Source of the DNA: Podarcis pityusensis
Taxonomy: Eukaryota
Assembly: GCA_964106645.2 (NCBI GenBank)
Contig: OZ067040.1
Length of the DNA: 64,000 bases
Direction: 5' to 3' (one strand)
In this document: piece after piece, positions 2,449-64,000 of the stretch
Numbering within the stretch: the stretch's first letter is position 1
How the letters are laid out: every line of letters begins with the position of its first letter
The notes under the pieces: generated by a model
Database searches by the model: none
What the model saw: only the letters and a program-made list of their open reading frames with translations
What the model was told of the DNA's origin: nothing
Program-made: the position numbers and the translations under genes

Positions 2449-4159
2449 CTTGAGTGAGCCTTTTTAGGCTTCACCCAGGCCCAGGAAGTGGATCACAGCT
2501 TGCCTGCGTATTCAGCCAATGGCAAATGTACTGTTTTGTAGGACGTGCGTAGAAATATAGACACAGACAAGAATGCTAATTTGTCACTGCCTCTTTCTGT
2601 TTGTTCACTTAAAGAAGGTAGATTTCCAAGGGGGCTTTGAGTAATTTTTTTCTGAAAAGGGGGACCAATAAGTTTGGGAACCCCTGGGCCAGACCTTTGG
2701 ATGTTGGATCATCGACATCAGTAGGGCCCTAAAGGGGGAGGTTTGGGGGTGGCCAGAAGAGGACCTGTAAATGCTTTGGTTCCAAAGGATCCAAAGCTGT
2801 CCCATTCCCCTGACCCCCATTCAGGGGTGACAAGACCTAAACTTTCTTAGCTTTAGCAAGGTGGTGGCCTCAGATGTTCTCAGATCATACAGGTCCAGAT
2901 CATATAGGTCCAGCCACCTTTGGCTCTCCCTTCCCTTTCCCCTAGATGCAATTCTGGTGCCAATTACTTGGGAGTAAGTCCCATTGGCTTAAGTAGATGT
3001 TGTGATTGCTCTGCTAGTCCATTAAATGGCTACAAGATTGCAGTCTTTTAGCAAACTCAGTGAAACCTATTTATCACACACTTTCAGCAAATTCAAATGC
3101 ATAAAGAACATTTAAATTAAGCCTACTTTTTTGAATTTTTGATAAGAATTGAGAGCAGCACAAATTTAAGATGGAGACCCATATCAACACTATTCAGCTA
3201 TGGGAAATAGCTATATTAAAGAGCATGCTACATTTCTGTATTCTTTTTTGGGGTTGAATGTAGTTATTCATGCATAATTAATACAAGTAAGCTGAAGCAG
3301 TTGGAAAGTATTTCATTAATAGATTTTAAAGGAGTAAATTAAAAGATTAGTCTATGTATCCTTTTGCTGTTTCCTCACCTTTAATGGCAGAAAGAACATT
3401 GTAAAGGACAGTATATTTGCCAGAATTGTAATGCAAATTAATGAATTCAGATACTGTCAAGATACTGTTCAGATTAATTGGACCTATTTAAATGTACTGT
3501 AGTTACTGCTAAAATATTAATGACTTTTATATCTTTCTAAAAGGAAATAAGATTTTACCTACTACTGAGTTTGAAATAATTAGGTTTCAAACGCAGCTGA
3601 GAAATGTAATGTTGGTACTTACAGTAATATGCAGACACTAAATGTGGCATGTGCCACTATAGTATTGATAGTATTAAAAAAAAATATCTCTCATGGGTGG
3701 GATCTTCTGAAAGGGTAGGCTAACCTTTTATATTACCAACCAATAAAATGCTCTGGTTGAATGCACTCTTTGCATGGTCACTATACCAAATACAAGCTTT
3801 TATATGTCCACCCATGGCTCCTTTGATTCCTGTTTGCAGAGCCTCACATCGCCCTGCTGTCTTCTCTGCCCTTTCTAATAATGCCTTACATTTTAAACCC
3901 TAATCTGTAATCAGTTTCTTCCTATTTCTCTGGTCATCTGCTGCCCCACTTCATATTTTCCAATAGTTCTGTTTTCAGTATTTATTTGTTTTTTCATTAA
4001 AATATATATTTAAAAATATGTATCTCAGGGTGGCTTGCAGTCCCAAAACAGAACAGATCATGGAATTAAGGCCCATAAAACTGAAATCACAATAAAAGTC
4101 AGATCTCATCACAAATTAAACACACACACACACATACACCGTTAACCTGTGAGAATGAA

Positions 4160-4700
4160 ATGATTTACTCATCTTCAAGAAGGCCAATGGGTAATACGTA
4201 TCCTCTCCTTGAGAGTCCTAACAGACACCCTGTGATCCAGAGAGTCAGTCTGGACACATGGCCAGCAGCTGAGTTTTTCATATAGCGGAAGGGATGGATG
4301 CATATTCCTTCCCTTCCAACATGCACCTGCATTAAGATAATGTCTGAACCAAGGCGCTGATCATCTATGTCAAGGTTGAGGAGCATTCTGTAGGTCACAT
4401 GTCAGTGGGCCAGAGACGAAGTGGGCGCGGTAATGGTTGTGATTCTTATTGTTGTACAATAGATTGCCTTCCACCCACCCAAAACTCAGAGGGTTCTGTA
4501 CGCTCAGACATGGGCACATTCACATCCATTCAAGCATTCAAGGGGTATGGCCTGGGGAGAGGAAATGTGGTCTTGGGGAGAGTCCTGAAGGCTGTATAGA
4601 GGGGCCACATTTCAACTCCAGGCTTGAGGTTCCTCCTCTGTGATCTATGCACTCAGGTGGTGTTGATTTTCTGGATTTCCCCCAGGAATAACTTTACAGG
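4160..4700 (-). mobile_element. Decayed RTE-type LINE 3' fragment
   Basis: The - strand peptide YRMLLNLDIDD...AGHVSR...SRRG..PIGLLED resembles the RTE C-terminus (GHVxR...RxRGRP...W.D). Confidence 0.55.
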
Positions 4701-6245
4701 TGTCCATAGTTAAAAATAAGCTTTGCAGGTTATGGCATGTCGCAGCATATTCATGTGATTTGTGATTGTAAAAAATGGGTGTACCCTTTCGGAATGAGCA
4801 CCTAGTTCCTTGCAACCAAATGCAGTTATAGCATAGTTTCTAGCATACCAGTGGCATCAGTATTACTTGTTTTTTGGAGGGGGGGAGGGGACTGCTTGTG
4901 TGCACTCACTGCGCGATATTTTTACCCATTTTATTTTCATTGACAGGAATGAGAAGGAAATAGGAGTAACACTCTGGTGGCTTTGCACAGGCACTGACAA
5001 TGCAAATCGGCTGTAAACTGTAGCCTGCAACTTCCATTTAATAAGGTCTTCTTATTTTTTTGTGCTGCTTTGCCCCTAAGGGTTGCAACCTGAAACTGGG
5101 TCATCAAAATGCGTGAAGTGGTTGAAAAGACAAAAATGTTTTCTTCAGTAAAGGTTCCGAGTGGCAGGGAGCCATCAAAGTTTATTGATATCCCTTTAGC
5201 TCAGGGAAAAAAGGCTGAGAAGCTCTGGCACTTAAACTTCCAGAGTGTATCAGAATATGTGGCCTTAAGCAAGTCTGGTGTGCTTCAGTGCCACTATTGT
5301 GTTTCATGTGTTCATAAATAGTTGGCATATGCTTTGAAGCTCTGAGCACCAAAGAATAAGGATTTAATTGCTGGCAAAAATACACAGCTTCTTTACAAAT
5401 CTATTATTTCCTATAACTTCTACTAGACTACTGTATTAAGGCGCTCCCGTAACCTGCTTTGTCTGTCCTGCCAATTAATTGTTAGCAAGGGCAGTTTATG
5501 AAGGGCTAATAATATGATTTGGAGCATCAGTACAGCACAGAAATAAAACCAGAATTGGGTGCATGATATTTTTGAAGATACAATAAATAATTAAAGGTGA
5601 TAATGAAATATTCATTTTAGGCTTTTTAAAAGCCAGTTTTCTGAATTCAGACTACCAGGACAAATGAACAATCAATAACTTTTTTAGTTTTTGTACCAAA
5701 CAGGGACATAATTTCGGTAATAATAGTACACCCAGCATTTTCACTAAGGCTAGCAGTTATCCTACTCTGGAATACAGTAGCAGTCATACAAAGCAATCCA
5801 GATTATGCAAACCATGGTTGTATTTGTTTAAGTTTTGGTTTAGTGAACCTATTGAAGTTGTTGAATTTCCAAAATGCTTATTCTTTCCAATATTGTTTGC
5901 AAACCAACATATGCTGAAGCCAAGAAAGCAAAATACAGGCATTTTTGTTTGATAGCTGTTCCTGCATCGCAGTTGATGCAAAATCCTCAGGACAGTGGAA
6001 GTATAGAGCAAATCATCATGGATGCTTGTATGAACAGCTTTGTACATAATAGACTTTGGGTGGTTATAAAGTATCTGGGTCAGAACTACTCGACGTGTCT
6101 CTTGCAATGATGATTATATTAGAACCTGGGCCCATCGAATGAAACTGCATGACTGAGTGAGGACAGACAACAGGAAGTGGTAATTCATGCTGCACACAGT
6201 TAGACATCGGGATTTGCTTCCACAAGATGTGGTGGCCACATGTGA

Positions 6246-6495
6246 GAGCCAGTGTGGTGTAGTGGTTAAGAGCGGTGGATTCGTAATCTGGGGAACCGGG
6301 TTCGCTTCCCGGCTCCTCCACATGCAGCTGCTGGGTGACCTTGGGCTAGTCACACTTCTCTGAAGTCTCTCAGCCCCACTCACCTCACAGAGTGTTTGTT
6401 GTGGGGGAGGAAGGGAAATGAGAATGTTAGCCGCTTTGAGACTCCTTTGGGTAGTGATAAAGCGGGATATCAAATCCAAACTCTTCTTCTTCTTT
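6246..6495 (+). mobile_element. tRNA-derived CORE-type SINE (Squam3-like)
   Basis: A box TGGTGTAGTGG, B box GGGTTCGCTTCCC, CORE segment GGGTGACCTTGGGCTAGTCAC, (CTT)n tail. Confidence 0.85.
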
Positions 6496-6844
6496 TAGAG
6501 GAGATTAGACAAACTGATGAAGGAGAAGGCTGTCTGTTTCTGCTGGTCATGATGGCTATGACTAGATCCACTGTTGGAGCCAGTATGCCTCTTGTGTACC
6601 AGTTGCTGGTGCTACCAGTCCACAAGCTGGGAGAGTGCTGCTGCTTGTGGACTTTCCACAGATACCTAGTAGGTCCCTGTGAGAACATGATGTCAGCTTA
6701 GGTGGGCCAGAAGAGCTGCTCTTAGCTTCTTAGGATCCTGGCCATCTTTGTAGTGCCTCAGGATCCAGGGTATGAAAAGAAATGCATTGGAGGTTCCATT
6801 GGTTCTTGTGGCTTTAATAGCGTAGGCCACCCTGGAAATATTTA

Positions 6845-7086
6845 CAGTGGTACCTCAGGTTAAGAACTTAATTCGTTCTGGGGGTCCATTCTTAACCTGA
6901 AACTGTTCTTAACCTGAAACACCACTTTAGCTAATGGGGCCTCCTGCTGCCGCCACGTCGCCGCTGCACGATTTCTGTTCTCATCCTGAAGCAAGGTTCT
7001 TAACCTGAGGTACTATTTCTGGGTTAGCGGAGTCTGTAACCTGAAGCATCTGTAACGTGAAGCGTCTGTAACCCAAGGTACCACTG
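6845..7086. mobile_element. Tc1/mariner (Tigger-like) MITE, family A
   Basis: TIRs CAGTGGTACCT...AGGTACCACTG with TA on both sides. Confidence 0.9.
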
Positions 7087-10000
7087 TATATTGAAAGGTA
7101 GGATGTAAATCAGTTAAATAAACATTTGCAAGTTAACTCAGGAGCAGCTGAGAGAGTGCAATCATGGTTGCTGGGCAACCTCTGAGTAGTGTTTACATGC
7201 ACTTGGCCTACAATTCGTACAGCATCTTGAAGGAAAGGAGGAACCCAGAAATGAGAGCTAGATATGCCCCTACAAAGGAAGGGCTGGCTCAGCCCAGTCA
7301 CTAAGCTATCTAAGCTACAACTTGGGACAGTGCAGTTCATGGAAGAAAGGAAGGTAGAGGGATTCCACATCCCTACAACTACTGGTTTGTTTTTCAGGTT
7401 TCACTGTACCTCCCTCACAAGGCAATTCCTTTTTTTCTCTCTTTTGTCTTAACCTCCTTTCATCCCAGCAACAAAGAATTTCTCATCATCGGAAAAGGCA
7501 AGTGGAAGGAAGGATCGTCCATTTGTTGGAAATCTTTTTTCTATGGTGAGGCAGGATACGCCACTGTTGGCTTTCAATTTGCAGCCGCCTTTTTCCTGCA
7601 AGAGCGAGGACACTGTGGGTGTGAGCCACACAAAGTAGAGATTGTTTCGCCGGTCAGAGAAGTTGCAAGAAGAGAATCAGTAGGTAAAAGGCTGCAGAGT
7701 TTTTAAAAAGAGGCTGCCACACCCACACTCAGCCAATCAATCAGAGGGCGGTGGAGGTGTGGAGGCATTAATAATATAAACTCAAGTCTGCATTGTAAAT
7801 CACAGAGGCTCTCTAGATTATATTCAGCTGTTACCCATTTGCTGCATAGAATCCAGGAATCCTCCACCGAAGAGAAATTTGAGCACATAAAAGAAGTGTG
7901 CTGTAGCTTAAAGTCTTTCTTTTCATTGTTCTCACAACACCAGCCCATTTAACTGATGGTGAATTGCCCAAGGCATGGCTTATGTGGGATTTGAACAGAG
8001 GGGGGGTTCAATACCTAGCCCCTGGATCACAATAGTTAGCCTGCATTTGCCATTTAGTGTATCAAACTCCACAGCATACCCGGCACCACCAAATAGTCAA
8101 AAATAATTTGGCTGCACCCCAAATAAAAAAGGGGGAGTTAATAACCTTATGCCATTCCTTATCTGTGCTGTCAATCAAATCCCTGTTAGCCAGGAAAGGT
8201 TTTTATCTTCTTTCTTTTAAAAATATGTTACAAGCTACATTTAGTAAGTACTAAGTTAAATGAAATGTCGGGTTATTTAATTAAAATGTACAAAGCAGCA
8301 CCTTATCCAATTACAGGGGAGAAGTGTGTGATCAGGAAGAATGTTGCAAGAAGCATAAGTTAAATGTTTTAAGTAACGCTTTTTAGTGGTCATAGGTTGT
8401 TAACTGTTCACTGTTCTTTCATTTTAGGAATGTATGTTTATATATAAAAATTCAATAAACATATGGGGCGGGGAAAGCCAATCACACTTACCCTATCCAA
8501 AAATAAGTATGTGTGTGGCTAGTGCCATTATATAGTTTAGTCACTTGGTGGAACTTTGCTTCATTGCATCTGGGGGACAGGAGGAGTTCCCAGTAGTTGT
8601 TCTGGTCTGGTCTGAAAGAAACACCATGGGTGGATCTACACACGGGGGGGGGGGGGGAGCTATAAATAAGTCAGAAATTAAACCGTTATAACAAAAGGAA
8701 AACAAACGATGGAAAATCACATAGATATTTTTTTTGTGTGGGCTAGTGAATCTCTTCTTCTCCACCCTTTTAAATTAAATTTGTAGACTGTTATTTTAGC
8801 ATACAAACAGTCCACAGCAGCGGTGGCACATCTTGGTTTGCCGCTTTGGGCGAAACGGTTAAGTGCTGCCTTGCCTTGCCAGCACCATGTGATCTGCTGC
8901 ACCAATCGCTGACTGAGAAGCTCCACCATGATCGTGCTGATATTGGGTGAGAGTCCCCCACCCCGCCGTGGATGTAATCTCACCCAAAAGTGGTGCTGAT
9001 GCTGATGTTTCTTACCTGCTGCGGGTACGAAGTCGCCTTTGGGGGCTTCCGCTGCCTTAGGCAGCAGCCTCACTCCATCTAATGGCTAAGCAGTCACGGC
9101 ATAGATCTTCAGCTTACCTTCATCATATCCTCTCCTTCTGGATTCCTGCAAATGCTCTCAAGGATTTAATAAATAATTTGTATATGTGATTTGGATACAG
9201 AATTAGGGCACTGTGAATGATAGCATGCATACTCACACCCAGATTTTTGTAGTACTCTGGCTGATAGTAGGCTATCCTGTTCGGAAATATTGACTGGATT
9301 ATTTTGCTTATTTTACCCCAACTGGAAATTGTGCTTCTAGAGAGACACACTATTTGGCAGTCATCAGGTAAAAACATTCCGCAGAGTAAGTTTCTCCCGT
9401 TGAAGTTTAAATGCAGCTCTGAGTGAATTCTTACTGGACAGAATAGACGTAATTAAGGGTAACTGAACTAACAGTATTTTGTACAGTGCAAACTAATGTG
9501 ATTTGTTATGTTGAACATGAGCATTGTACGCTGTGCAATATATTTTAACAGTTATGACTCAAACTAAATTAGCATCATCCGTGGAAATAGAATACCTATG
9601 ATTTAAAATGTCTCTCTGAATGTGAAGGCGAGAAGGATAGCCCAAAAGATGTTGAGGAACACATAAGGAATAATGAGTCTATCGTTAGCTGAAGTCCTAC
9701 AAATGAATCCTCCCTCAAGCTGAGACATTTTGGATTCTTCTTCTTCTTCTTTGTTCTTTTTCAATCTGCTGATCTTTGAGATCCTGAGGTGTTGTTATTT
9801 TTTTTTTTTGTCTTTGGAATGTTAATGCCTCAGTCAGACATGCTTCCAGACATTTACAAAAAGGAAGGGGGGGGGGGAGAGAATGCTTTCTCAGCCTAAT
9901 CATCCCAGCGTCAGAACATTGACAAATGATAGGTCAAAAGAACTGGAATTACTGACATTTTTACATAATGAATAGAGCTAAGATGAAAAACACAAAGCAA

Positions 10001-13000
10001 TCATTTTGACTATGTTCAAGGAAACAAAAATTATATAAATGTAGAAAATCACGGACACAATCAGCCGTGTGATAGACAGAGCAAAGATGTAAGAAACTTC
10101 CTTCTTTCACTACCCTTCCCTCTCCCCCAATGATTAAAAAACTAAAAACCCTCCCCTTAGGGAGTAGATGGCAGGTTGAGGAGGGCTCCAGGGAAGACGG
10201 AAGAAGCCAACCTAGCCATACCTCTGGAAGACTGGTGGAAAGTTCTGTTCTGAACATCATTTACTACAAGGGGTGATGGGTTCAGCCCCATATTATCTCC
10301 TTGAGGAAAGATGCTTAGGGAGTGCTGTTTTCTGCATAAGGCGAGGCCAGATGGTTCCTTTGGATCATATCTGGAGTTCTCTGCCTGCTATGATTCTCTT
10401 GGAGGATTTATTTTCCTTGGAGGGGGAGGGTTGCAAGACAGAGGAGCAGTGGAGGAGGGTTTGGTGGTGGGGTTGAATCAACATGTGCAAGGGGCCCTCT
10501 GACTAGCAAATGCTAGAACAGGGTAGGGAACTTCCTTCAGCCTATGGTGCATGAAGCACTGTAGCGGTCGTATTTAAATAGCAAAAATAAATATGAAATA
10601 AGGAAAATAATACTTGTAAAAGCAAGAGCTTAACATAGATAATCCTGGGTAAATAAAACAAACATTCTGTTGACACGTTTAAATATAATTTGCCTAACAC
10701 TGAATATTGGAAAAAGCGTAGTGATGTTAAGTCTATATTTGGATTAGCCAGCAGGACATTGAATTCCTTTCGTTGGTGTTATTGGACATCCTTTCGTTGC
10801 AAAATGTACTGAAATCTCATCTGTAGTCATAGTGCAGCATCTTTTTTTGGTAGTATGTGTGCGCAAGGAAAAACTGAGAAGGGGTTGAATGGGCAGTTGG
10901 CAGCCATTCATTGTCAATGATTGCTCTTCATTCATAAAAACGGTAGAACAGAGAGGTGGAGCCAGAAGAAGCAGCTTCTGAAAATGAAATGGAAGATCTG
11001 TGCTTATTTGCATAATCAGAAGTGGTTTTAGAAGCTGTTCAAATACTGCATGATGATTATAATGAGATGTATGATAAATATGTGAGAATAAATGAAATCT
11101 AGCTTGATTCTTCATTCTTCACCCATCCCAATTTTGTGCACAAAACCATTTGCTTAACTTTTGTTTCTCTCTGTCTGATTACAGCTTAAATCAGTACGTA
11201 GATTATTTTCTACTTCCAAGAATATAAAGAAAATAACATTCCCATTTTAGTTGTTGAGAAACTGCACTAGAAACTATAATATGGCAAATGGACCATTTTT
11301 TAAAAAGCTAGCTTCACTTCTTGGCTCTATTCCAGTTTCCAAGCTCAGTTTCTCTTGTTCTTGCAGCTAATCTTCTTTGCTGTTCTGTTTTTATCAATTC
11401 TCTTTTGATTATATCAATCCATTATTCTCTTGCAGACATTGATCATTTTTCAGCCTTCCGATGTGGCACACATCCATTTCTCAACTTCCTTTACTGGGGC
11501 GGGGGAGGGGGGGGCAACTTCAGGGTATCAAAGCTAATCTTTTCCCTTTCTTGGTAACCTCAGCACCCACCATTGGGCTTGGATTGCAGTTGCAGCTGAT
11601 TAGGAACGTGTACTGTGTAGTGTTTCAGGTCAATATGATGGCAAGAGAGTTTGATAATGTATCCTTTCAACGATAGCATCCCACATCTTAAAAGAATCTT
11701 TATTGGAAGACACATATAATTGAAACATTGCTGTTGGGGTGTGGTCTGAAGGAACTTAATGCAGACACTCTGCTTAAGCTCAGGTGGTCTGAATTTGGTC
11801 AGTAACTGGATGGGAGACTGCTTGGGGACCTCTGACAGGGGTGTCAACTTGAATAAATTGTTGGGAAGGGCAGGTAAGCCCTGTCCTGCATAATTGATCG
11901 CAAGAGGCGGTGCATGCACACCGTTTGAATGGCAATGCACATCCACTGGGGGGGGGCAGTCCCTCAAATATTTTATTGGGGGGTGGTGGCTGAAGGGACC
12001 TTGGCTCCTATGGGACTGCATGCATGCCACGCCACCCTAGGTTACAAAGCTGGGTTGAGCTTTGTAACATTTCATTTCATTTTTCATTTATTAGACTTAT
12101 TAGTTGCTTGTTACCCAAAGGTCTCCAAGTGACATACAGCAAAAAAAGAGATATATACAATACATATGGGAGAAAAGTGTGTGTGTGGATTATATAATGC
12201 ATTAATATTTCATATAACATCTAAAAAAATACCCAAATAATAAACAATGCGATACTCTGACCCACTAATGAACAAATAAGCAAAACCTCAACCTTCTCCT
12301 AGTCCAGAAACCATTCACATCGAATCAACCATTTCCCCCCTTTAACCTCCCCATCCCACTCTGAGGTGTGGTCTCAAGGTCAGCTGTTGCAAATCAGTGG
12401 TGGGTGGATCCAGTGTCCTCCAGGGATGGTCCGGCAGCATCTCTCCTTTCCCTTCAGGGGGGAAGCAGTAGCACAGCAAAGCAGGACAATGATAACAGAA
12501 GTTTTGTCTGCTTTGCAATTGACCTGGCTACTGCTCCTCTCCTGATCAGCACTGGAACTTTCTGACTCAGCTTCTGCTTTTACCCCAGCTGCCACATTCG
12601 GTGCTGCCTGCAGACATCCAGCAACATCTAGAGGGCTGTCTGCAGGATCCCAACCCCTACCCCTACCCCTTCCTCTATTATGTTGCCTCATGTTACAGTA
12701 GCTTTTCTGCCACTGATTTAAATGCCAGGACGGCACAATTGCTCTTTCGATTAAAGAAATACTAGAAAATATGTTGGCGTCCTACAGTATGTCCTCATTT
12801 TAAAGTACACTTTTGTGAGTGACATAGCGGACTGCATATTATTAATTTATTTCATATATTTATGCTCCGCCTTTTAGGGTATAAGATTCACAAGGCAACT
12901 TGCGAGAGCTGAGAAATAGATTAAACAGTAAACATGAAAGCATGGCAGTAAATCGGCAACTACAACAGCAGCGGCAAAAAATGTGAAGCCAGTCTTAAGA

Positions 13001-26227: not shown

Positions 26228-26375
26228 ACATAGCTCAGTTGGTAGAGCATGAGACTCTTAATCCCAGGGTTGTAGGTTTGAGCCCTACATTGGATGAAAG
26301 ATTCCTGCACTGCAGGGGGTTGGGCTAGATGAACCTAGTGGCCCCTTCCAACTCTACAGTTCTATGATTTTATGA
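26228..26375 (+). mobile_element. Short tRNA-Lys-derived SINE with CR1-type tail (Squam2-like)
   Basis: TAGCTCAGTTGGTAGAGCATGAGACTCTTAATC head; tail CCCCTTCCAACTCTACAGTTCTATGATTTTATG. Confidence 0.8.
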
Positions 26376-35215: not shown

Positions 35216-37532
35216 GATATAACCTGTGTTTTTGCTTTCTGCCTTGGACTGCAAAAATGTGGATCTGATCAGTGGCTGTATTTGGTTTGGTGGGTGGGCT
35301 GTTACAATCCAAGAAAACATTTAGGGTGCAAATTCAGATAATGATGGGCACATTTTAAATCATCGGGAGAAGTAGCTTGTTCAGCAACATATTTTTTCAG
35401 TGGAATGCATGTTCAGAATTGAAATCGGAAGTCCACAATTCAGAGTTAAAATCCTATTAATTCCAGTAATACTTTCTTTATCTGCACTTAGCTTCATCAC
35501 ATCTTTCCTCTCTCCTGTTCCCTGACCCATGTTATTCTAACTCACTGCAAATTTTCTGACTATTCCTCTTCCATAACTTGATTTATGTGACACCCACATG
35601 ATAAGAAGTTGAAAACCCTCTTACAGATTAATTTAATTTGTTACAAATAATGGTGCATTGTCGAGAAAGTTCAGGTCCTATTGATTTCTTTGGGTTTAAT
35701 TTTTCATGTGTTCTTAAATGAATGCACACCCCAATCAGGAATTTAGAATAAAGCATAAAGTTTCCTGTTTTCTTCTAAGTCTAACTCTATGGTGTCAGGT
35801 GTTGGCTGTTGTTGGGATGCAGAATATGGGACCAGATGGCCCATTGGTCTGACCTACAGATTATAGTTGCAGTAGCATAGTCCTTTGAAATCTCTAATTC
35901 TTCTAGATATTTTCCATCTATTTGCTTTTATTACCTGTAAAATGTTCTGCCCCCCCCATGCCTAGGTTCTTGTCATTCTGGCATGGTATGACTCTCTATT
36001 GGCTTAATGCAAATCATATCCTTACCAGAACTAGACACTTATCGTGTTGAAATCAGAACAAATACTTGAAGGTTAAAACTGTGATTTATGGGGTAAGCAG
36101 AGGGAGATATGTGTCTGTGTGGGAATTTAACTGAAGGAACCACTGCATTTTCAGCCGTTGGGAGTTTGAACAAAAACATATGCCAAAATTTCAGCTCCCC
36201 AAAAGTCTTCTCTTAATTAGAGTTGAGTTTACACAGAACAACAATTACATTGATCCAATTACCATCTGCAACATGCTTCAATGTGAGGCACAAGGCTGAA
36301 GGAGAACTGAAGTCTATTTGCATCTAAAGTACAATTGTCATAAATCTATCCTACATTCTGCTTTTAAAGGAAGAAAAGTGAATATGAGGATGCTGCGGAA
36401 TGATGTGTGACATCATTCACAATAACAAGTACTCTATTTGTGTCAAGAATTCTAAAGCCTTTTCATGTTCCTAATTAAAGAACCCTCTTTTTTTGACAGT
36501 GGGAGATGCTAATTGGCAGTTTTTTTAAAAAGGGGGGAAATGATGCTCTGTAGAAATTTGGTGTTGCAAACAGCTTGCTTTACTAACCTGCCAGCATCTG
36601 AAATGTATAAATAAGAAGCACAATCCTGAAAACATGTTATCTGGTCTGTTTGTAGTTTTCCCAAAACAGATTTGTAGATTATTGCATGTGGATATCAGGG
36701 TACTACGTTGCTTTACTAAATTCTGTAAGGAATTTCCTGTTGGCTGTGGTGAGGGGGAAAGGTGAGATTAATCTCAAAGCCTTGTTAAGATACGTTGGAT
36801 GTGAAAATTAGATTAAGAGATTGCGAAGGGTGTGGATTTATACTGGAAGCCTGTCATTGGTTGTCATTTTATGTTTTTGGTTCATAAGAGTCATTTGAAG
36901 TTCACATACTGCAGTGGACATTTTGTAGGCTGATTTCAGCAAGCAAATAACTCATGCATTTGATTTCTGGGCAATGGCAGCTGGTGTAAACAGTAAATGC
37001 CTGCTTCTGCTGAGTAGTAATTGACAGGTAAGGAAGCCAGGTGCTTTTACTGGTGACTGCCTGGTTGGAGGCAAGGAGGAGCCTTCACAGCACTGTGGAG
37101 GTGTGTTGTTGAATGAACAGAGTGTCCCGTGCAGGTGTGGGATAATGACACTCGTGATTCACCATCAGTGTCCCTGTCTCTGCACCACTTCTTCTCTGCC
37201 TCCACTGTCTCCAGTCAGATGTTTGCCAGCAATAGACTGTATCTCAGTGCTTATAGAACTACTTTGTATACGGAAGGACTCAGCTTCCATCCCTGGTGTC
37301 TCCAACTAGGGCTGAGGCAGACACCCTGTCTTAAACCCTGGAGAACCCCTGCCAGCCAATATAAAACAATATTGAACTAGAATCAGGGATGAGGAACCTG
37401 TTGCCCTCCAGGTGTTGCTGGGGACTGCAACTCCCATTATTCCTGACCATTGTCCATTGGGGCTGGTGCCGATGGGGGTTTTGAGCCGAACAACGTATAG
37501 GGGGCCATATTTTCCCCAGTGCTGAGCTAGCT

Positions 37533-37656
37533 CAGGGTTTCCCAAACCTGGGTATTCAGCTGTTTTTGGATTATAGTTCCCATCATCTCTGACCACTGGT
37601 CCTGCTAGCTAGGAAGGATGGGAGTTGTATTTCAACAGCAACTTGGAGAAACCCTG
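37533..37656. mobile_element. Palindromic hAT MITE, adjacent to a second one (~37384-37524), both inside a SINE
   Basis: CAGGGTTT...AAACCCTG termini; TSD AGCTAGCT/AGCTAGAT (7/8). Confidence 0.8.
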
Positions 37657-51183: not shown

Positions 51184-51416
51184 ACTGTTTTAATCAAAAA
51201 GAAAGCCTCTCAAAAATAAGGCAGGCACTTCTGCATACATACACGGGGGATGCCCTACCTAGGTGTACAGAAGTGCAAAAGTTTGTGAATTAAAGGAAGT
51301 GACTTAAAAAAACAAAACCTGCCTGATAGATGATGACAACAGGGCAAATGGATTGAGAGAGAAGATGTAAATAAAGCGGAGGGATAGCTTTCCCATCTTC
51401 AGAATATTATTTATAA

Positions 51417-51552
51417 CAGGCAGAGGCAAACGCGGCCCTCCAGATGTTTTGGTACTACAACTCCCATCATCCCTAGCTAACAGAACCAGTGGTCAGGGAT
51501 GATGGGAGTTGTAGTACCAAAGCATCTGGAGGGCTGAGTTTGCCTATGCCTG
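51417..51552. mobile_element. Palindromic hAT MITE
   Basis: CAGGCA...TGCCTG, near-complete internal palindrome, exact 8-bp TSD ATTTATAA (51409-51416, 51553-51560). Confidence 0.9.
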
Positions 51553-51772
51553 ATTTATAATTTCAAATTGCCGAGATTTGGTTCTATCAATCCTGTATAA
51601 CTGTGCAGCACAACAAGGAAAGCCTGGGGTAGGGAAAAAAGGTGCCCTTTATACCTTCCCCATTCTTGAAACTCACCACCACTCACCACCCTGAGATCTG
51701 AACCACACTGCAAGGCTCTTGTAGGCTGGCTGGAGCTGTGAGAAGGGCAGAGACACACTGCATCGCTTTGTT

Positions 51773-53948
51773 GTTTTTTTTAAAATAATATTTATTACTT
51801 TTATAGATTACAAAAAGAGAAAGAAAACAAGAAAGAAAAAACAGGGAAAAAAAAGAGAAAAGCAAAAAGAAAAAAACAATACAATACAATATATAGACAA
51901 TACAAAACACACCCTAAACTCAAAACTAAACACATTAAACTAACCTGAACAAACCCCACTCCCTAGCCTTAACCCTAAATGAAACAAAACAAAAACAATT
52001 TAAAAACATACATCATCTCTTTTCCATACTCTATCTTTCATTCTCTTGTTTCCTCGACCTCCTCTCACCTCCCTTTTTGTATTCCACTTCTATTAATTGT
52101 TTCAGCAAATCCTTTCCATCTTTCTCCATTTTCTGTAATATTGTAAATAACGTATTTTTTAACCTTGTTTTCCATTAAAACTAAAATACTTATATATGCT
52201 TAACTCCTTATAACATTTCTACTAAGCCCATAAAAAATAAAAAATACAAAAAATCATTCCACCATTTTTCTATCACTCATTAGTTTTACCATAAGTCTAT
52301 ATATAAACTTTAAATTTTCCAATCTCCTTCCACCATCTCCCAGGTTTCGGATTCTGCCAGTCCTTTCCGTCAGCTCCATAAAGTCCATCAACCTGGTGAT
52401 CTTATGTCCGAGGCTCTTAACTCTTTTCCAAGTCCCTTCTGCAGGTCTTCTTCATTTTCTTTAATGCTAAAGAGCAAATCTTGGGGAAACTCCAACCTGT
52501 CAATCCTTTTCTTCCTTCTGAACAGATCAGCTAAATTTCCATAGTTAAAGCTACAGTCCATAAAGTATTTCAGGGCATATTTCAGGATTCCTCCAAGTCC
52601 AAAGGCCCCCAAAACTTCAATCTCCTCCAGGCCCGAGTCCATGTCCCAAAAGTCAGTTAATCCCTGCATAGAGGGCTCTTTCCAACTTTCCTTCTTTAAT
52701 CCAAACCAGGATCCATTCCTCAGAGTCTGACTTTTCCTAGATTCAATCATAAAAGGCCTCAACTTATAGTCCTCAATTTGCTTCTGTAAAGCCACAGATC
52801 TCACTTGTATTATTTTATGTTCAACAACAGCAGCATTCTCCTTCTCCTCCTTCTCCTCCACCATTTGTCCTGCCAAAATGGATTCCTGTACCAAGTCCTG
52901 AATTATTTCTGTTTTGGTGTTCGCTTTTTGACTCAAATTGGTCACTTTCTGTTCCAAATTATCAACTTTAAAAGTCATGTCATCCATCTTCTTGTGAAGT
53001 TGTCCCAGCGAACAGCTTATCTTACATAAAACAGTCACAATGGCCTCTCCTGTCAACATTTTTAAATGGTCCAAGGTCGCTCTCTGGTTCTCAGAATCCT
53101 TATCTGCAGCTGGGAATCCCCCAGTTACGCTCCTGTTACAGTTTCAAAAGCTCCCTCTAGAGGGAAACAGTCTCCACTTGTATCAGTTCTTTCAGGCACA
53201 ACTCAAGCATTAAAGATAAATTTTAAGTTACTTTTCCTCTTTTTTAAGCGCAGAAAAGGACAATGGAAACAGTATCTTACTCTTATTTAGCTAGCTGTCA
53301 AATCCGTTCTGTCAAATGCACTCTCTCCAAACGTCATCTGGCAGCCCGTTCCCAGGTTCAGAGCAGTGGTAATTTGATTTTTCACTCTCTCCTGCAGGCT
53401 CACTAGTTCCAAAATTTCCCCCTCTTCTCCTGCTTCCAAGGGGGGTTTTGTATTTTAAACCGGTGGAAATTTAATCCTTTGCCAAAAGCTTTCAAAGGCT
53501 TTAACTTGTAGCGTCTTTGCTTCAGTCTATTTACAAAAACAGGAGGCGGACTTCCTGTTTACAACCTTCCCGTTCAATGCCAAATTAAAGTATTTAAAAA
53601 TCCAATTTTCCGTTTTACTCCCGCGTAGTTGTTTAAAATCCAATTGTCCACAGGAAAAAGTCAGCGCTCTCCGGCAACAGCAATGCGGCTTCACTCCGTG
53701 AAAGAAGCAGTCGATTCAAAGCACCGCGCCACTCACCCCACGTTGCTCCGGACCCCCAAAACAGGGTTTCCCCGCGAGTAGGGAAGGCGCAAAAGTTGCC
53801 AGCCGAATCCCAGGTTCACAAGCTTCTCCCGCTTGTGATTTCAATGGGTCTCCACCTTCGCCGTGGCGGTCAGACCCTGTTTTTCACGGAGCAAGTTCCT
53901 CCCGAACGGAGGAGCTCCGCCATTGCCGGAGGCGCCAACCCGGAAGTC
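51773..53948 (-). mobile_element. Full-length non-autonomous L1-derived retrotransposon (HAL1-like, ORF1 only), 2176 bp
   Basis: 15-bp TSD CTGCATCGCTTTGTT at 51758-51772 and 53949-53963. The right flank continues TTTT/AA, the L1 endonuclease site. 5' end is GACTTCCGGGTTGGCGCCTCCGGCAATGGCGG with a CpG-rich 5'UTR. AATAAA (- strand, 51791-51796) is followed by a short poly(A). One long ORF; no endonuclease or RT. Confidence 0.85.
52388..53059 (-). CDS. L1 ORF1p-like protein (223 aa from the first ATG): coiled coil plus degenerate RRM/CTD
   Basis: Heptad region LHKKMDDMTFKVDNLEQKVTNLSQK. MIESRKSQTLRNGSWFGLKKE resembles the ORF1p LENRSRRNNLRIxGLPE motif, IEVLGAFGLG resembles IERAHR, and LEFPQDL resembles IFxDL. 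No stops. The ORF track starts at TTG 53074; the first ATG is at 53059. Confidence 0.7.
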   Translation of the reverse strand: MLTGEAIVTVLCKISCSLGQLHKKMDDMTFKVDNLEQKVTNLSQKANTKTEIIQDLVQESILAGQMVEEKEEKENAAVVEHKIIQVRSVALQKQIEDYKLRPFMIESRKSQTLRNGSWFGLKKESWKEPSMQGLTDFWDMDSGLEEIEVLGAFGLGGILKYALKYFMDCSFNYGNLADLFRRKKRIDRLEFPQDLLFSIKENEEDLQKGLGKELRASDIRSPG

Positions 53949-54774
53949 CTGCATCGCTTTGTTTTAAGAGCCACTTGTACTTAAATATTTTCACCGACAG
54001 TTGCACATATGATAGTGCTTCTTCCAGAACTTTTGGACAGCTTGCAATTTGCAGCTTATGATTGGTTTCAGCCATAACAGCAGTTAATGGGTTAAATCGA
54101 AAAGTGTATTATTCTGCTATACATTTTTAAAATTTTGTTTGACATAGTGGCGAGTGAGACTGGTGGTGCGTGTGACAGCTTTCACTTTGAAAATGTTATG
54201 GATGAAATGATAACAGAGCGCTTATGAAAATCTTTAAGGAGAGAGAACCTACGTTTTATTAAATTGAAAGTAATAATCAGTTTGGACAATGACTTCAGGT
54301 AAATTTACCTAAGAAGAGGAAGGGTTTTTCTTTGTATGGCATTTGCTATTATCAAATAACTTTTTTGAGGTTTCTACGTCCTGGCAAAAACACAGACATC
54401 TGTGTTGGTCGTACACAGTATTGGGACTCTTCTGAAATCTATAAGTGACCTTTATTTGTTTTGGAAATAGGAGATTTTATTGGTAATTGTTTGCATTAAA
54501 AGCAGCTTGCTTGGCTTATGTTAAAGAAACCAATATGAGCAGTTAAAAGTTGCTTTAAATTGCTGGTGCCTCAGGGTGAAGTGTGCATAATAAATAGATA
54601 AATAATCCCGCTGTTTGTTTTTCCTTTCAAATAATCAAGAGTGGCACTTGTATTCATGCTTCTGTTTAGCAAACATAGTGAAGACACACATAGTGTGGAT
54701 TAGTGCTAGGCACTTGATGGGTGAGCTTGTCTTGGTGCTTTTGCTATATAAAAAACCCCTTCTTTTCCTTACAG

Positions 54775-61644: not shown

Positions 61645-64000
61645 TAGATAGATAGATAGATAATACTTTATTCGGCTATAAGCCCACAAGGTAAAACAAA
61701 TCAATAGATAAAAATCAATAGATAAAATCAACAGCATTTTACAATCTAAAATATCAACTAAAATATTTCAACGCATAATCTCTAAATGTACCGTGTTATG
61801 GCCTTGAAGATAAAGATGGTGCATAGAGTTTACTGAATTTTTAATAGTCATGCAGCATTCCATGAAGTCTTTTATATGACAGAACTGAGATCAGGAATCT
61901 AGCAACCTGTAAAGTTCTATAAGAGTCAATGTCCTGGAGTAGATAAGCTAGATGTAATTCAGGTGGTTTAGCAGCAATTTCCAGAATGATTGAACTCAGG
62001 ATCCTTGATCGGGGAACATTGTATAAGGGGCAATTAAACAAGATATGATAAAGGGATTCTATCGATTTGTTGTCACATGTGCACAAAACAGAGATTTTAC
62101 CGTTAGAAAATCTATTGCTCAGCACATTTGAGGGGAACACATTAAATCTGGCTCTAACAAATGCGAATCTATGCGACGCAGCCGATAAAGTAGACAGATA
62201 TCGAGGTATCTGGGACATAGATGTAATGCCCTGATATATCGGGGAACATGTACCTCCACCTGTGGTAAGATTTTGTTGTAAATCTACCTCCTCCAGTCTT
62301 TGTTTGATGACCTTTTTAGCTGTAATTAGATCTAAATTAAGTATATCGGAAGGAGAGATTCCATAAGACAACAGTTTGGAATGGATTTTTGTTGCCCATG
62401 GGCTGGTGAATTCATCTCTCCAAAGGCACTGAATAAGATGGTAGTTTGGCAATTTATGCCAAAGGGACAGCCAATAATTAAAGGCATGTCTCCACATCAG
62501 AATCTCAAGGGAGGGGGTCTTAAGTTCTAAGCGAATGGCAGAGTTGCTTACACAGGAGGGTAGTTTCAAAAGGCGTCTTAGAAAAAGATTTTGCAATGTC
62601 ACCAGAGGCAAGAGGTTTACAAAGGCGCCCCATAAAGGGACCGCATAGGCCATAGTTGCAACCACTTTTGCACTATAAACTTTTAAGGCGGATGGAACAT
62701 GCATAGCCCCCTCAGTAAAGAAGAAGCGTAGTAGAGCGTAGATAAGGGCTTTCATCTTGTTTTGTAAATATGTGATATGCGCTTTCCATCCCATATTATA
62801 CTGGAAGTAAATTCCTAGATATTGAAATTTGTAAACTTGTTCAATTGGCTTCCCCTCAAGTTCCCATCTATACAGTTTACGACTCCTGGAAAAAATTAGG
62901 ACTTTAGATTTGGAATGGTTAATAGTAAGTAAATTTGTTTGGCAATATGATGCAAAAATCTTAAGGGCCCTCCTCAAACCGATTCGAGAATAAGAGAGGA
63001 TCACCGCATCGTCAGCGTACAATAATAAGGGGCAGCGATAGTCTGCAAGCCTGGGTGCATGAATGGAGGTTTGGGCCTCAGCTAGGGGCGTCCTCATGTC
63101 ACTAATATAAAGGTTAAAAAGATAGGGGGCAAGGATACACCCTTGTCGTACCCCCTTGTTTATTGGAACTGAGTTTGTGAGATCGCCCTCAGGTGTTAAC
63201 CTCACCCTAGCGGCCGTCCCTTCATGTAATTTAATCAATAGCCACAACAGCCTTTTTTCTATGCCCCACTTTGCCAGTTTTTCCCATAACAGCTCTCTAG
63301 AGATACTGTCAAAAGCCGCCTTCAGGTCTATAAAAGCGGCACATAGAAGACCATGAGTAGGGGAAGAATACTTCCGCGCCAAATGATATAGAATTATAGC
63401 ATGGTCAATAGAAGCGCGATTTGGTCTAAACCCGACCTGTTCATGGCCTATCAGATTGGAATCTTCGGCCCATTGGGTTAGTCTGGTTAGCAAGAAGCGA
63501 GTGTAGATTTTTCCGATGATTGATAATAAACTGATATTACGATAGTTTCCTGGGTCCTCTGGTGGTCCTTTTTTATATATAGGAATTTTGATGGACTCCT
63601 TCCATGATGTAGGTATCTGGCCCGTGGCATTGATTGCATCAAAGATTTTTGCAAGAATTTTAGCCCACCATATTGGGTGTTGTTTAATAGCTTCCGCCGG
63701 GATCAGATCGGGCCCTGGGGCTTTATCAGTTTTCAGTTTAGCAATTAAATCTACTATTTCCTCCGGGTCAGTATCTGGCCATATGGGCAAGTGACTTGAG
63801 AGAGTATCAGATTGGATGTTAGAGATGTCTGTCTGGGAGAAATATTTTCTTAGAAATTGTTCCCATGTCGGGGCTGGGATAACCGTCAATGGGTATTTCC
63901 TCGATCTTTTGTTGATTAAATTCCAAAAACCGCGAGAGCTGCGAAGCTTAGAGGCAGCAATCAGCGCTTGCCAACGTCTTAGCTGCCACTCGTGCTTGGC
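61645..64000 (-). mobile_element. Non-LTR retrotransposon (LINE, probably RTE-X clade), 3' portion; 5' end beyond the window
   Basis: RT ORF, ~195-nt 3'UTR, AATAAA (- strand, 61667-61672) and a (TATC)n tail at ~61645-61661. The clade call rests on RT plus a C-terminal CCHC motif plus the microsatellite tail. Confidence 0.9.
61841..64000 (-). CDS. LINE ORF2-type polyprotein: reverse transcriptase plus C-terminal CCHC zinc knuckle (5'-partial)
   Basis: Motifs KAPGPD, IPIYKKG..NYRNISLL, EQVGFR, FIDLKAAFDS, GVRQGCILAPYLFNLY, LYADD, FQYLG and CTCDNKSIESLYHILFNCPLY. I translated 63890-64000 by hand and the frame stays open to the window edge (AKHEWQLRRWQALIAASKLRSSRGFWNLINKRSRKYP), giving at least 719 codons. 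Confidence 0.95.
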   Translation of the reverse strand, partial: AKHEWQLRRWQALIAASKLRSSRGFWNLINKRSRKYPLTVIPAPTWEQFLRKYFSQTDISNIQSDTLSSHLPIWPDTDPEEIVDLIAKLKTDKAPGPDLIPAEAIKQHPIWWAKILAKIFDAINATGQIPTSWKESIKIPIYKKGPPEDPGNYRNISLLSIIGKIYTRFLLTRLTQWAEDSNLIGHEQVGFRPNRASIDHAIILYHLARKYSSPTHGLLCAAFIDLKAAFDSISRELLWEKLAKWGIEKRLLWLLIKLHEGTAARVRLTPEGDLTNSVPINKGVRQGCILAPYLFNLYISDMRTPLAEAQTSIHAPRLADYRCPLLLYADDAVILSYSRIGLRRALKIFASYCQTNLLTINHSKSKVLIFSRSRKLYRWELEGKPIEQVYKFQYLGIYFQYNMGWKAHITYLQNKMKALIYALLRFFFTEGAMHVPSALKVYSAKVVATMAYAVPLWGAFVNLLPLVTLQNLFLRRLLKLPSCVSNSAIRLELKTPSLEILMWRHAFNYWLSLWHKLPNYHLIQCLWRDEFTSPWATKIHSKLLSYGISPSDILNLDLITAKKVIKQRLEEVDLQQNLTTGGGTCSPIYQGITSMSQIPRYLSTLSAASHRFAFVRARFNVFPSNVLSNRFSNGKISVLCTCDNKSIESLYHILFNCPLYNVPRSRILSSIILEIAAKPPELHLAYLLQDIDSYRTLQVARFLISVLSYKRLHGMLHDY

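Follow-up and report, generated by a model that had tools for sequence, protein, structure and literature searches.

The window analysed here is the whole 64-kb stretch of contig OZ067040.1 of the lizard Podarcis pityusensis (assembly GCA_964106645.2; 64,000 nucleotides, without N). On its minus strand, from 53948 down to 51773, lies a 2176-bp unit, referred to below as half-L1, with the insertion hallmarks of the long interspersed element L1 and a single short open reading frame (ORF). We interpret it, with a probability of roughly 85%, as a full-length member of an L1-derived family, abundant, long-lived and non-autonomous, in a genome of lacertid type, similar in kind to the HAL1 elements of mammals. 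The window contains only one copy of the unit. Both strands were read between 51600 and 54100, and the features are listed here with the evidence for each in parentheses; TSD denotes target-site duplication, UTR untranslated region, ORF1p and ORF2p the two L1 proteins, RRM the RNA recognition motif and CTD the C-terminal domain of ORF1p.

51773-53948, minus strand: the whole unit, a probable non-autonomous L1-derived element of 2176 bp (TSD bounds, L1 homology of all parts, word depth).
53949-53963, no strand: TSD copy adjoining the 5' end of the element, followed by TT/AAGAG on the plus strand (15/15 identical, TTTT/AA context).
51758-51772, no strand: TSD copy adjoining the A-tail (repeat family D6).
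53060-53948, minus strand: L1-type 5'UTR of 889 nt, with a CpG-rich first ~400 nt at 53549-53948 (alignment to the L1-type contigs L003 and L004).
53915-53924, minus strand: AATGGCGGAG box, element nt 25-34 (AATGGC.G invariant across four L1-type 5' ends).
52388-53059, minus strand: predicted pruned ORF1p of 223 codons plus stop (HMMER matches; hhalign probability 99.4%, E 5e-21).
52763-53050, minus strand: predicted coiled-coil part, aa 4-99 (AlphaFold2 helix, sub-threshold HSBP1 match, trimer model).
52577-52600, minus strand: site of the RRM-core deletion of ~39 residues, between aa 157 and 158, GLGG/ILKY (alignments, bridging contig).
52448-52471, minus strand: site of the CTD deletion of ~17 residues, between aa 200 and 201, FSIK/ENEE (alignments, bridging contig).
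52274-52394, minus strand: ORF1/ORF2 junction (about 52391-52394) and the decayed last ~37 ORF2 codons (match to ORF2 tails in L004).
51782-52273, minus strand: 3'UTR, whose sense strand is rich in T (A 31, C 6, G 21, T 42%; 74% identity to L004 9695-10106).
51791-51796, minus strand: AATAAA polyadenylation signal (sequence).
51773-51781, minus strand: short A-tail, A8 then C (sequence).

The unit is bracketed by an exact direct repeat, CTGCATCGCTTTGTT, which is the sole repeat within 51500-54200 to do so; by our own arithmetic, chance alone would give ~0.003 exact 15-mer pairs over 2.7 kb. The reconstructed empty site reads ...GCTTTGTTTT/AAGAGCC on the plus strand and fits the L1 endonuclease consensus TTTT/AA. 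Two T's preceding the inferred nick lie outside the perfect repeat and a single C breaks the tail on the other side, so that the duplication can be taken as an exact 15 bp or, if one mismatch is allowed, as 17 bp. The first letters of the sense strand are GACTTCCGGGTTGGCGCCTCCGGCAATGGCGGAG (also read as GACTTCCGG...AATGGCGGAG), and its first 400 nt have a GC content of 46-60% and a CpG observed/expected ratio of 0.88-1.23, against 0.29 for the whole window. The ORF opens with an ATG at 53059 and closes with a TGA at 52390-52388. No other sense ORF of at least 75 aa was found in the unit, which does not contain an ORF2 with endonuclease and reverse transcriptase; blastx against the reverse transcriptase elsewhere in the window gave no match, and Rfam and tRNA scans around the unit returned nothing relevant. 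A preliminary description, made from the sequence alone, had placed the 2176-bp unit, its 15-bp TSDs at a TTTT/AA site, the 5'UTR, the 223-aa ORF and the AATAAA just where we find them, and needs amending in two respects. The poly(A) it reported is present as an A-tail, though one of only A8 and then C (11 nt counting the next AA, hence 8-11 nt in all and not a long poly(A)); and while the endonuclease and reverse transcriptase domains are absent as it stated, the stop of the ORF1-like gene is followed not directly by a 3'UTR, but by ~37 decayed codons of the ORF2 C-terminus.

The 5' end of half-L1 aligns with those of L1s that carry both ORFs. Element nt 3-334 match L003 81-387 with 66.6% identity (E 5e-19), nt 1-608 match L004 4529-3905 with 66.3% identity, and over 330-610 nt the leader is 66-69% identical to L003, L004 and a third contig, L002. 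In L003 the leader type is associated with an ORF1p gene (P0007), followed by an ORF2 opening with an APE-type endonuclease (Exo_endo_phos, 31.3 bits), and the L1 on the minus strand of L004, a P. raffonei locus, has a piece of ORF1 and an 834-codon ORF with an RVT_1 domain (127.8 bits). A four-way alignment of such L1-type 5' ends shows that all of them start at GGACTTCCG, with unrelated upstream flanks and an invariant AATGGC.G box. The coincidence of these 5' ends with that of half-L1 argues that our copy is full length and not 5'-truncated, in agreement with the preliminary description.

The 3' part is related to the same kind of element, with 71-74% identity to an L1-type ORF2 tail and 3'UTR of Podarcis raffonei (for the 3'UTR, 74% over 410 nt of L004). 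For the segment TTGATGGACTTTATGGAGCTGACGGAAAGGACTGGCAGAATCCGAAACC, directly past the ORF, two L1-type elements in L004 give a match at their ORF2 ends, and the corresponding peptides read LMDFMELTERTGRIRN in half-L1 and MLDFLELADLTGRIRD or KLMDYMELAEMTGKIRD in L004, where the tail ORF bears the CWKC...H...C motif of L1 ORF2p. Since the TGA stop of the half-L1 ORF falls just inside this ORF2-derived sequence, the large deletion must begin at the RSPG codons of ORF1 and end where ~37 codons of ORF2 are still left. Removal of the missing segment by splicing would call for GT...AG at its borders in the parent L1; no GT follows the ORF1 breakpoint in L003, a weak test of such an origin because L003 is itself diverged and is not that parent. 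By homology, 5'UTR, ORF (see below) and 3' part are each L1-derived.

Two further observations concern these flanking parts. A 3'UTR block of ~75 nt at about 52055-52130 on the minus strand, GATGGAAAGGATTTGCTGAAA...GAATACAAAAAGGGAGGTG.GAGGAGG, is ~90% conserved in contigs that are otherwise ~65% alike and is over-represented in depth, and may be a cis signal common to these L1-type families. L004 8001-10172 (Podarcis raffonei CM049768.1) has a leader and 3' end of this type and represents another kind of deletion derivative, in which the N-terminal half of ORF1, its NLRIRALPE motif intact, continues in frame into part of ORF2; the annotation lists the product as the uncharacterized protein XP_053229072.1.

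An exhaustive HMMER search with the 223-aa ORF against 1.84 billion representatives returned 14 proteins falling into two groups. The short group (P0001, P0003, P0008 and P0011; 201-215 residues) matches the ORF over its full length and shares the C-terminus ...RASD(L/V)R(S/D)PG; the best match is P0001, with an E value of 1.5e-30 and 37% identity. The long group has the layout of ORF1p, with a coiled coil, NLRIRAVPE and then ...FRWEFPQGLSFSFK..., and two of its proteins are annotated in Podarcis raffonei and P. lilfordi; the nearest named relatives are from Podarcis, which fits the lizard host given in the preliminary description. With phmmer the ORF matches the ORF1p-bearing proteins P0004, P0006 and P0007 directly (E 1e-11 to 1e-12; a value of 5e-11 is also given for P0007), and P0007 is in turn colinear with human LINE-1 ORF1p (2ykp) over RRM and CTD in a single-sequence search (E 0.0046). 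This chain from the ORF through P0007 to the human protein makes the ORF a homologue of L1 ORF1p, as had been proposed, and a profile-profile comparison of the short with the long group by hhalign extends over 204 columns with two clean gaps (probability 99.4%, E 5e-21). Another predicted protein in the library, P0014 (422 aa), joins a TRIM-like N-terminus with RING and B-box to the RRM and CTD of an L1 ORF1p, and may be either a chimeric gene model or a genuine fusion.

Compared with lizard ORF1p, the short proteins are missing an N-terminal extension of ~60 residues and a further ~39 residues in the RRM, which the alignment to the human protein places at strand 3, helix 2 and strand 4. Also absent are ~17 CTD residues and everything past RSPG. 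The motif of the first RRM strand is decayed as well, reading LRNGSWFGLKKE in half-L1 against NLRIRAVPE in ORF1p. AlphaFold2 predicts a single helix for aa 4-99 with moderate confidence (block values of 64-81 for pLDDT, the predicted local distance difference test), the only part of the protein modelled with any confidence. The ORF is thus, as far as alignments and predictions can tell, a pruned L1 ORF1p composed mainly of the coiled coil together with fragments of RRM and CTD, and the earlier impression of eroded RNA-binding parts beside a persisting coil is borne out.

Taken by themselves, the hallmarks of the unit could equally belong to a processed retrocopy of a host mRNA, since a CpG-rich start with CCGGAAGT, a 5'UTR, an ORF, a 3'UTR, AATAAA, an A-tail and a TSD fit that explanation too, and the only Pfam match of the ORF, to HSBP1, might point to the mRNA of an HSBP1-like coiled-coil protein. 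That match is sub-threshold (E 1e-5; 25.7 bits against a cut-off of 28.6), covers 27 heptad-repeat residues, and is given equally by an unrelated bacterial coiled coil; it appears to be a likeness of coils. With L1 homology in all three parts of the element and the high copy number described below, a host-mRNA origin is refuted, and we give it practically no weight.

Other searches with these sequences were uninformative. Word-indexed protein searches were blank for the ORF and, for the profile of the short family, gave two members already known and nothing else; neither has a bearing on distribution. A search of a phage collection was blank and is irrelevant, the lizard ORF1p profile found only coiled-coil noise in the PDB, and ESM Atlas features gave arthropod clusters only, at about 0.9, one of them carrying Baculo_FP_2nd.

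The abundance of the family was assessed in Logan contigs from three DNA runs (X3, X7 and X6) of two organisms, aligned to 51200-54500 at 90% likeness. Single-copy flanks have word depths of 4.4, 10.5 and 26 in X3, X7 and X6 respectively, and the six bins of the ORF have depths of 560-2663, 2900-12316 and 9219-33292, hundreds of times those of the flanks; the UTR blocks, common to other L1 families, are even deeper than the ORF bins. The half-L1 family therefore amounts to hundreds of copy-equivalents, a figure to be read as an order of magnitude only. In DNA runs of seven organisms, 39-54% of the sampled 31-mers of the unit are present, suggesting that related species have near-identical copies.

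The internal junctions of half-L1 are likewise multicopy. The junction between ORF1 and the ORF2 tail is bridged by an X3 contig (record 4) at a depth of 270, the CTD deletion by another X3 contig (record 5) at a depth of 357 with 2 mismatches in 192, and the RRM deletion by an X7 contig (record 18) at a depth of 517. The same ORF1/ORF2-tail junction, with the remnant of the ORF2 tail, is found in the contigs that encode short relatives (L001, L002 and L006), and P0001, P0003, P0008 and P0011 carry the same deletions as the half-L1 ORF. An ordinary L1 that suffered internal deletions after it inserted would account for the single copy in the 64-kb window, and would not be expected to leave three junctions bridged at far above single-copy depth (270-517, put at 60-80 times) or the same junctions in separate contigs from other runs; this explanation is refuted, and its probability is negligible. 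The recurrence of the ORF-to-3'-end junction, in high-depth contigs and in deeply diverged relatives (protein identity 25-37%, frame still open), indicates a mobile family and not a local deletion. A recurrent junction is one of the two marks that the preliminary description had named for such a family, the other being different TSDs.

Several results pull against our interpretation of half-L1 as one copy of such a family. Summed depth is not copy number, and related L1 families add to the depth of the bins in both UTRs. This copy alone was read from end to end, so that the TSDs seen directly are its own. Pfam Transposase_22, a check put forward in the preliminary description, matches neither the half-L1 ORF nor the full-length lizard ORF1p even at E values up to 10, and residues 101-223 receive no confident fold from AlphaFold2, either as a single sequence or with an alignment of 9 rows. 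In one RNA run from another organism (X23), a few mostly part-aligned reads fall on 3'UTR and 5'UTR blocks and almost none on the ORF.

A maximum-likelihood tree built from the common columns separates seven short from five full-length proteins by one branch with support of 100/99, and the half-L1 copy has a short terminal branch close to this split. The simplest history, as judged from the sequences, would be a single origin of the deletions followed by long diversification. A recombinant origin of the coil was considered, in that the half-L1 coil is nearer to L1 ORF1p (52% to P0004) than to other short proteins (19-25%), and was dropped: the C-terminal half is also nearest to L1 ORF1p, and the tree groups all short proteins on one side.

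The insertion itself is present in X3, where a contig of single-copy depth (51525-51809) runs from the flank into the 3' end of the element. No empty-site joint (51772/53949) was listed among the contigs of the two organisms, the contig of the second organism ending inside the TSD. The insertion had been thought recent, which is plausible given the perfect TSD and the CpG-rich head. Compared with the majority of the family this copy has private changes at several sites. Two of them alter an amino acid, and one of these two (CGA to CAA) is typical of CpG decay.

Given a real family, the ORF might still be a passenger. On that explanation the 5'UTR promoter and an A-tailed 3' end would suffice for mobility, and the frame would owe its openness to youth or chance. 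The substitution pattern is in keeping with it: nucleotide identity between short-ORF subfamilies is 53-64% and protein identity 28-44%, identity is nearly equal at the three codon positions, and the ratio of nonsynonymous to synonymous substitution (dN/dS) ranges from 0.3 to 1.1 with method and region, with dS saturated. Amino-acid constraint on the ORF would therefore be weak at best and depends on the method. The lack of a confident predicted fold in the C-terminal half also suits a passenger, as do the decayed copies, P0002 with a premature stop and the fragments P0009 and P0010, although some decay is as expected of any transposon family.

The openness of the frame speaks against a passenger. 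Subfamilies that differ at 37-47% of nucleotides all retain a colinear open frame of 201-223 codons, and in a simulation at 37% substitution, indels not counted, only 0.02% of ORFs remained without a stop. Among contigs at least 90% alike, all nine indel variants making up at least 10% of depth are confined to the UTRs, leaving the ORF, 31% of the unit length, without any; under uniform placement the chance of nine out of nine falling outside it is ~0.04. The C-terminal motif RDLRASDLRSPG is also conserved across the short proteins. A counterweight is that the intact relatives were found through their open ORFs, an ascertainment bias. Because stops fixed in source lineages are irreversible and the frames are nonetheless open, we conclude that the active lineages have probably been selected to keep the ORF open; a passenger ORF we regard as improbable, though it is the most serious of the alternatives.

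These data suggest the following course of events. An ancestral L1 would have lost everything between the end of ORF1 and the last ~37 codons of ORF2, and in addition two in-frame pieces of ORF1, the RRM core and part of the CTD, together with the N-terminal extension. By analogy with L1, the leader with its CpG-rich head would act as an internal L1-type promoter, giving an RNA polyadenylated after AATAAA; the AATGGCGG box may be likened to the YY1 site that fixes the transcription start of human L1. The short protein would be translated from the half-L1 RNA, and ORF2p supplied in trans by autonomous L1s would nick at TTTT/AA and prime on the A-tail, leaving the 15-bp duplication; the retained ORF2 tail and the 3'UTR may help mobilisation. 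Promoter activity, translation, mobilisation in trans and a role for the protein are all inferred, the promoter of its own and the borrowed ORF2p of the preliminary description among them.

For the protein, the reading that we prefer, with lower confidence than the rest, is that of a coil adapter, in which the coil would let the short protein enter the ORF1p trimers of a partner L1, so that the RNA-binding domains of the partner, and ORF2p, could reach the RNA of the parasite. A predicted trimer of one half-L1 chain (residues 1-105) with two coil chains of P0004, a Podarcis protein of ORF1p type (residues 52-165), scored 0.65, and the highest score among three controls was 0.01. The mark of 0.65 is attained by 51 of 78 solved complexes, and by 2 of 108 mismatched pairs. 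At least 90% of contacts are common to the runs, the partner has a pLDDT of 75 or more, and the contacts recur every 3-4 residues, a heptad pattern, in a parallel homologous register. The weight of the result is lessened in that the controls were not coiled coils, the type of job differs from that of the calibration, close relatives of a true partner also pass, and passing does not amount to a measurement. The model lends modest support to the view that the short protein can enter ORF1p-type trimers, and it is in this form, as a modelled interaction, that the co-assembly with L1 ORF1p raised in the preliminary description persists.

The same model can alternatively be taken as interference with L1. 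The short protein would then mainly poison ORF1p trimers, or be a restriction factor adopted by the host, and would not serve the spread of the element; retention of the coil with deletion of the RNA-binding core is compatible with this, as is the predicted co-assembly, and the host protein L1TD1 has been proposed to act in such a way (PMC4161310). Against it, the ORF occurs in hundreds of dispersed retroelement copies with L1 UTRs and not at one conserved host locus, and the family itself needs L1 activity and would be harmed by strong interference. We think interference quite unlikely, somewhat more so than a passenger ORF. The coil adapter can be put in its fullest form as a lacertid lineage of L1 parasites that has reduced ORF1p to a coil-only adapter, made in cis and co-trimerising with the ORF1p of a partner, with a coil that tracks the fast-evolving coil of L1; we offer this as a tentative proposal that has the odds against it.

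Elsewhere in the window, a palindromic repeat of ~150 nt resembling a miniature inverted-repeat transposable element (MITE) lies at 51411-51560, within a unit at 51311-51643, with 83% complementarity between its arms. Word depth over the repeat is 6e5 to 2.6e6 where the flanks have 4-26, and many RNA reads of another organism map to it; partial copies occur at 37403-37629. Another long interspersed element, unrelated to half-L1, is represented on the minus strand at 61841-63889 by an open reverse-transcriptase ORF of 682 codons (RVT_1, 124 bits), which has a Cys/His motif at the C-terminus and whose 5' part may extend beyond the window. A tRNA-like match at 26231-26288 on the plus strand (Rfam RF00005, 41.5 bits, model positions 8-63) may be the head of a short interspersed element or a tRNA pseudogene. 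An open 227-codon ORF at 1437-2120 on the plus strand has neither a Pfam match nor similarity to the half-L1 ORF.

The half-L1 family can be compared with four known systems. SpIREs are spliced or internally deleted L1 RNAs that were reverse-transcribed and inserted with the normal hallmarks, and are single insertions that are dead on arrival. The half-L1 family, in contrast to such one-off copies, would be a self-perpetuating lineage with deep subfamily structure. HeT-A of Drosophila is a gag-only telomeric element of the Jockey clade, without long terminal repeats, whose Gag has zinc knuckles. Like half-L1 it has the first ORF only and relies on reverse transcriptase in trans, and its protein interacts with the Gag of a partner; unlike half-L1 it belongs to the Jockey clade, is specific to telomeres, has zinc knuckles and does not insert at L1-type TTTT/AA sites. 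Telomeric elements with ORF1 alone are discussed in bioRxiv 10.1101/2025.06.09.658640. L1TD1 is a host gene derived from ORF1p that has kept its coiled coil and is proposed to interact with L1 ORF1p trimers (PMC4161310), and differs from half-L1 in being a single-copy host gene with two RRM/CTD-like units.

The closest counterpart is HAL1 (Smit 1999; Bao and Jurka 2010, as summarised in PMC5753468), a non-autonomous L1 derivative of mammals that encodes only ORF1p and has had several independent origins; L1 is the likely agent of its mobilisation (PMC4161310). The half-L1 family resembles them in having an L1 5' region and an ORF1-type gene, without ORF2, amplified as a unit, and differs in its squamate host, its independent origin, its incomplete ORF1p and the retention of ~37 codons from the end of ORF2. 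Given the repeated origins of HAL1, a further independent origin is in character. Full-text literature searches found no description of a squamate half-L1; Repbase and Dfam lay outside the comparison, and the family may be catalogued there under an L1 name.

An L1 parasite with ORF1 only is thus a known kind of element, and what is new here is the squamate host, the depth of the lineage and an ORF1p pruned to a conserved open frame of coil plus fragments. Such parasites have so far been described as mammalian (HAL1), and this family would extend the kind to squamates. Units of 2.0-2.2 kb with ORFs of 200-223 codons escape Pfam, and annotators could mistake them for orphan genes. A frame held open through deep divergence without the RRM core raises the question of what the coil of ORF1p does alone, and the family as a whole that of how cis-preference can be subverted. 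With many L1 lineages coexisting in the genome, half-L1 offers a tractable pair of partner and parasite, and a lineage of coil-only adapters, if that reading is true, would be a natural experiment separating the function of the ORF1p coil from RNA binding.

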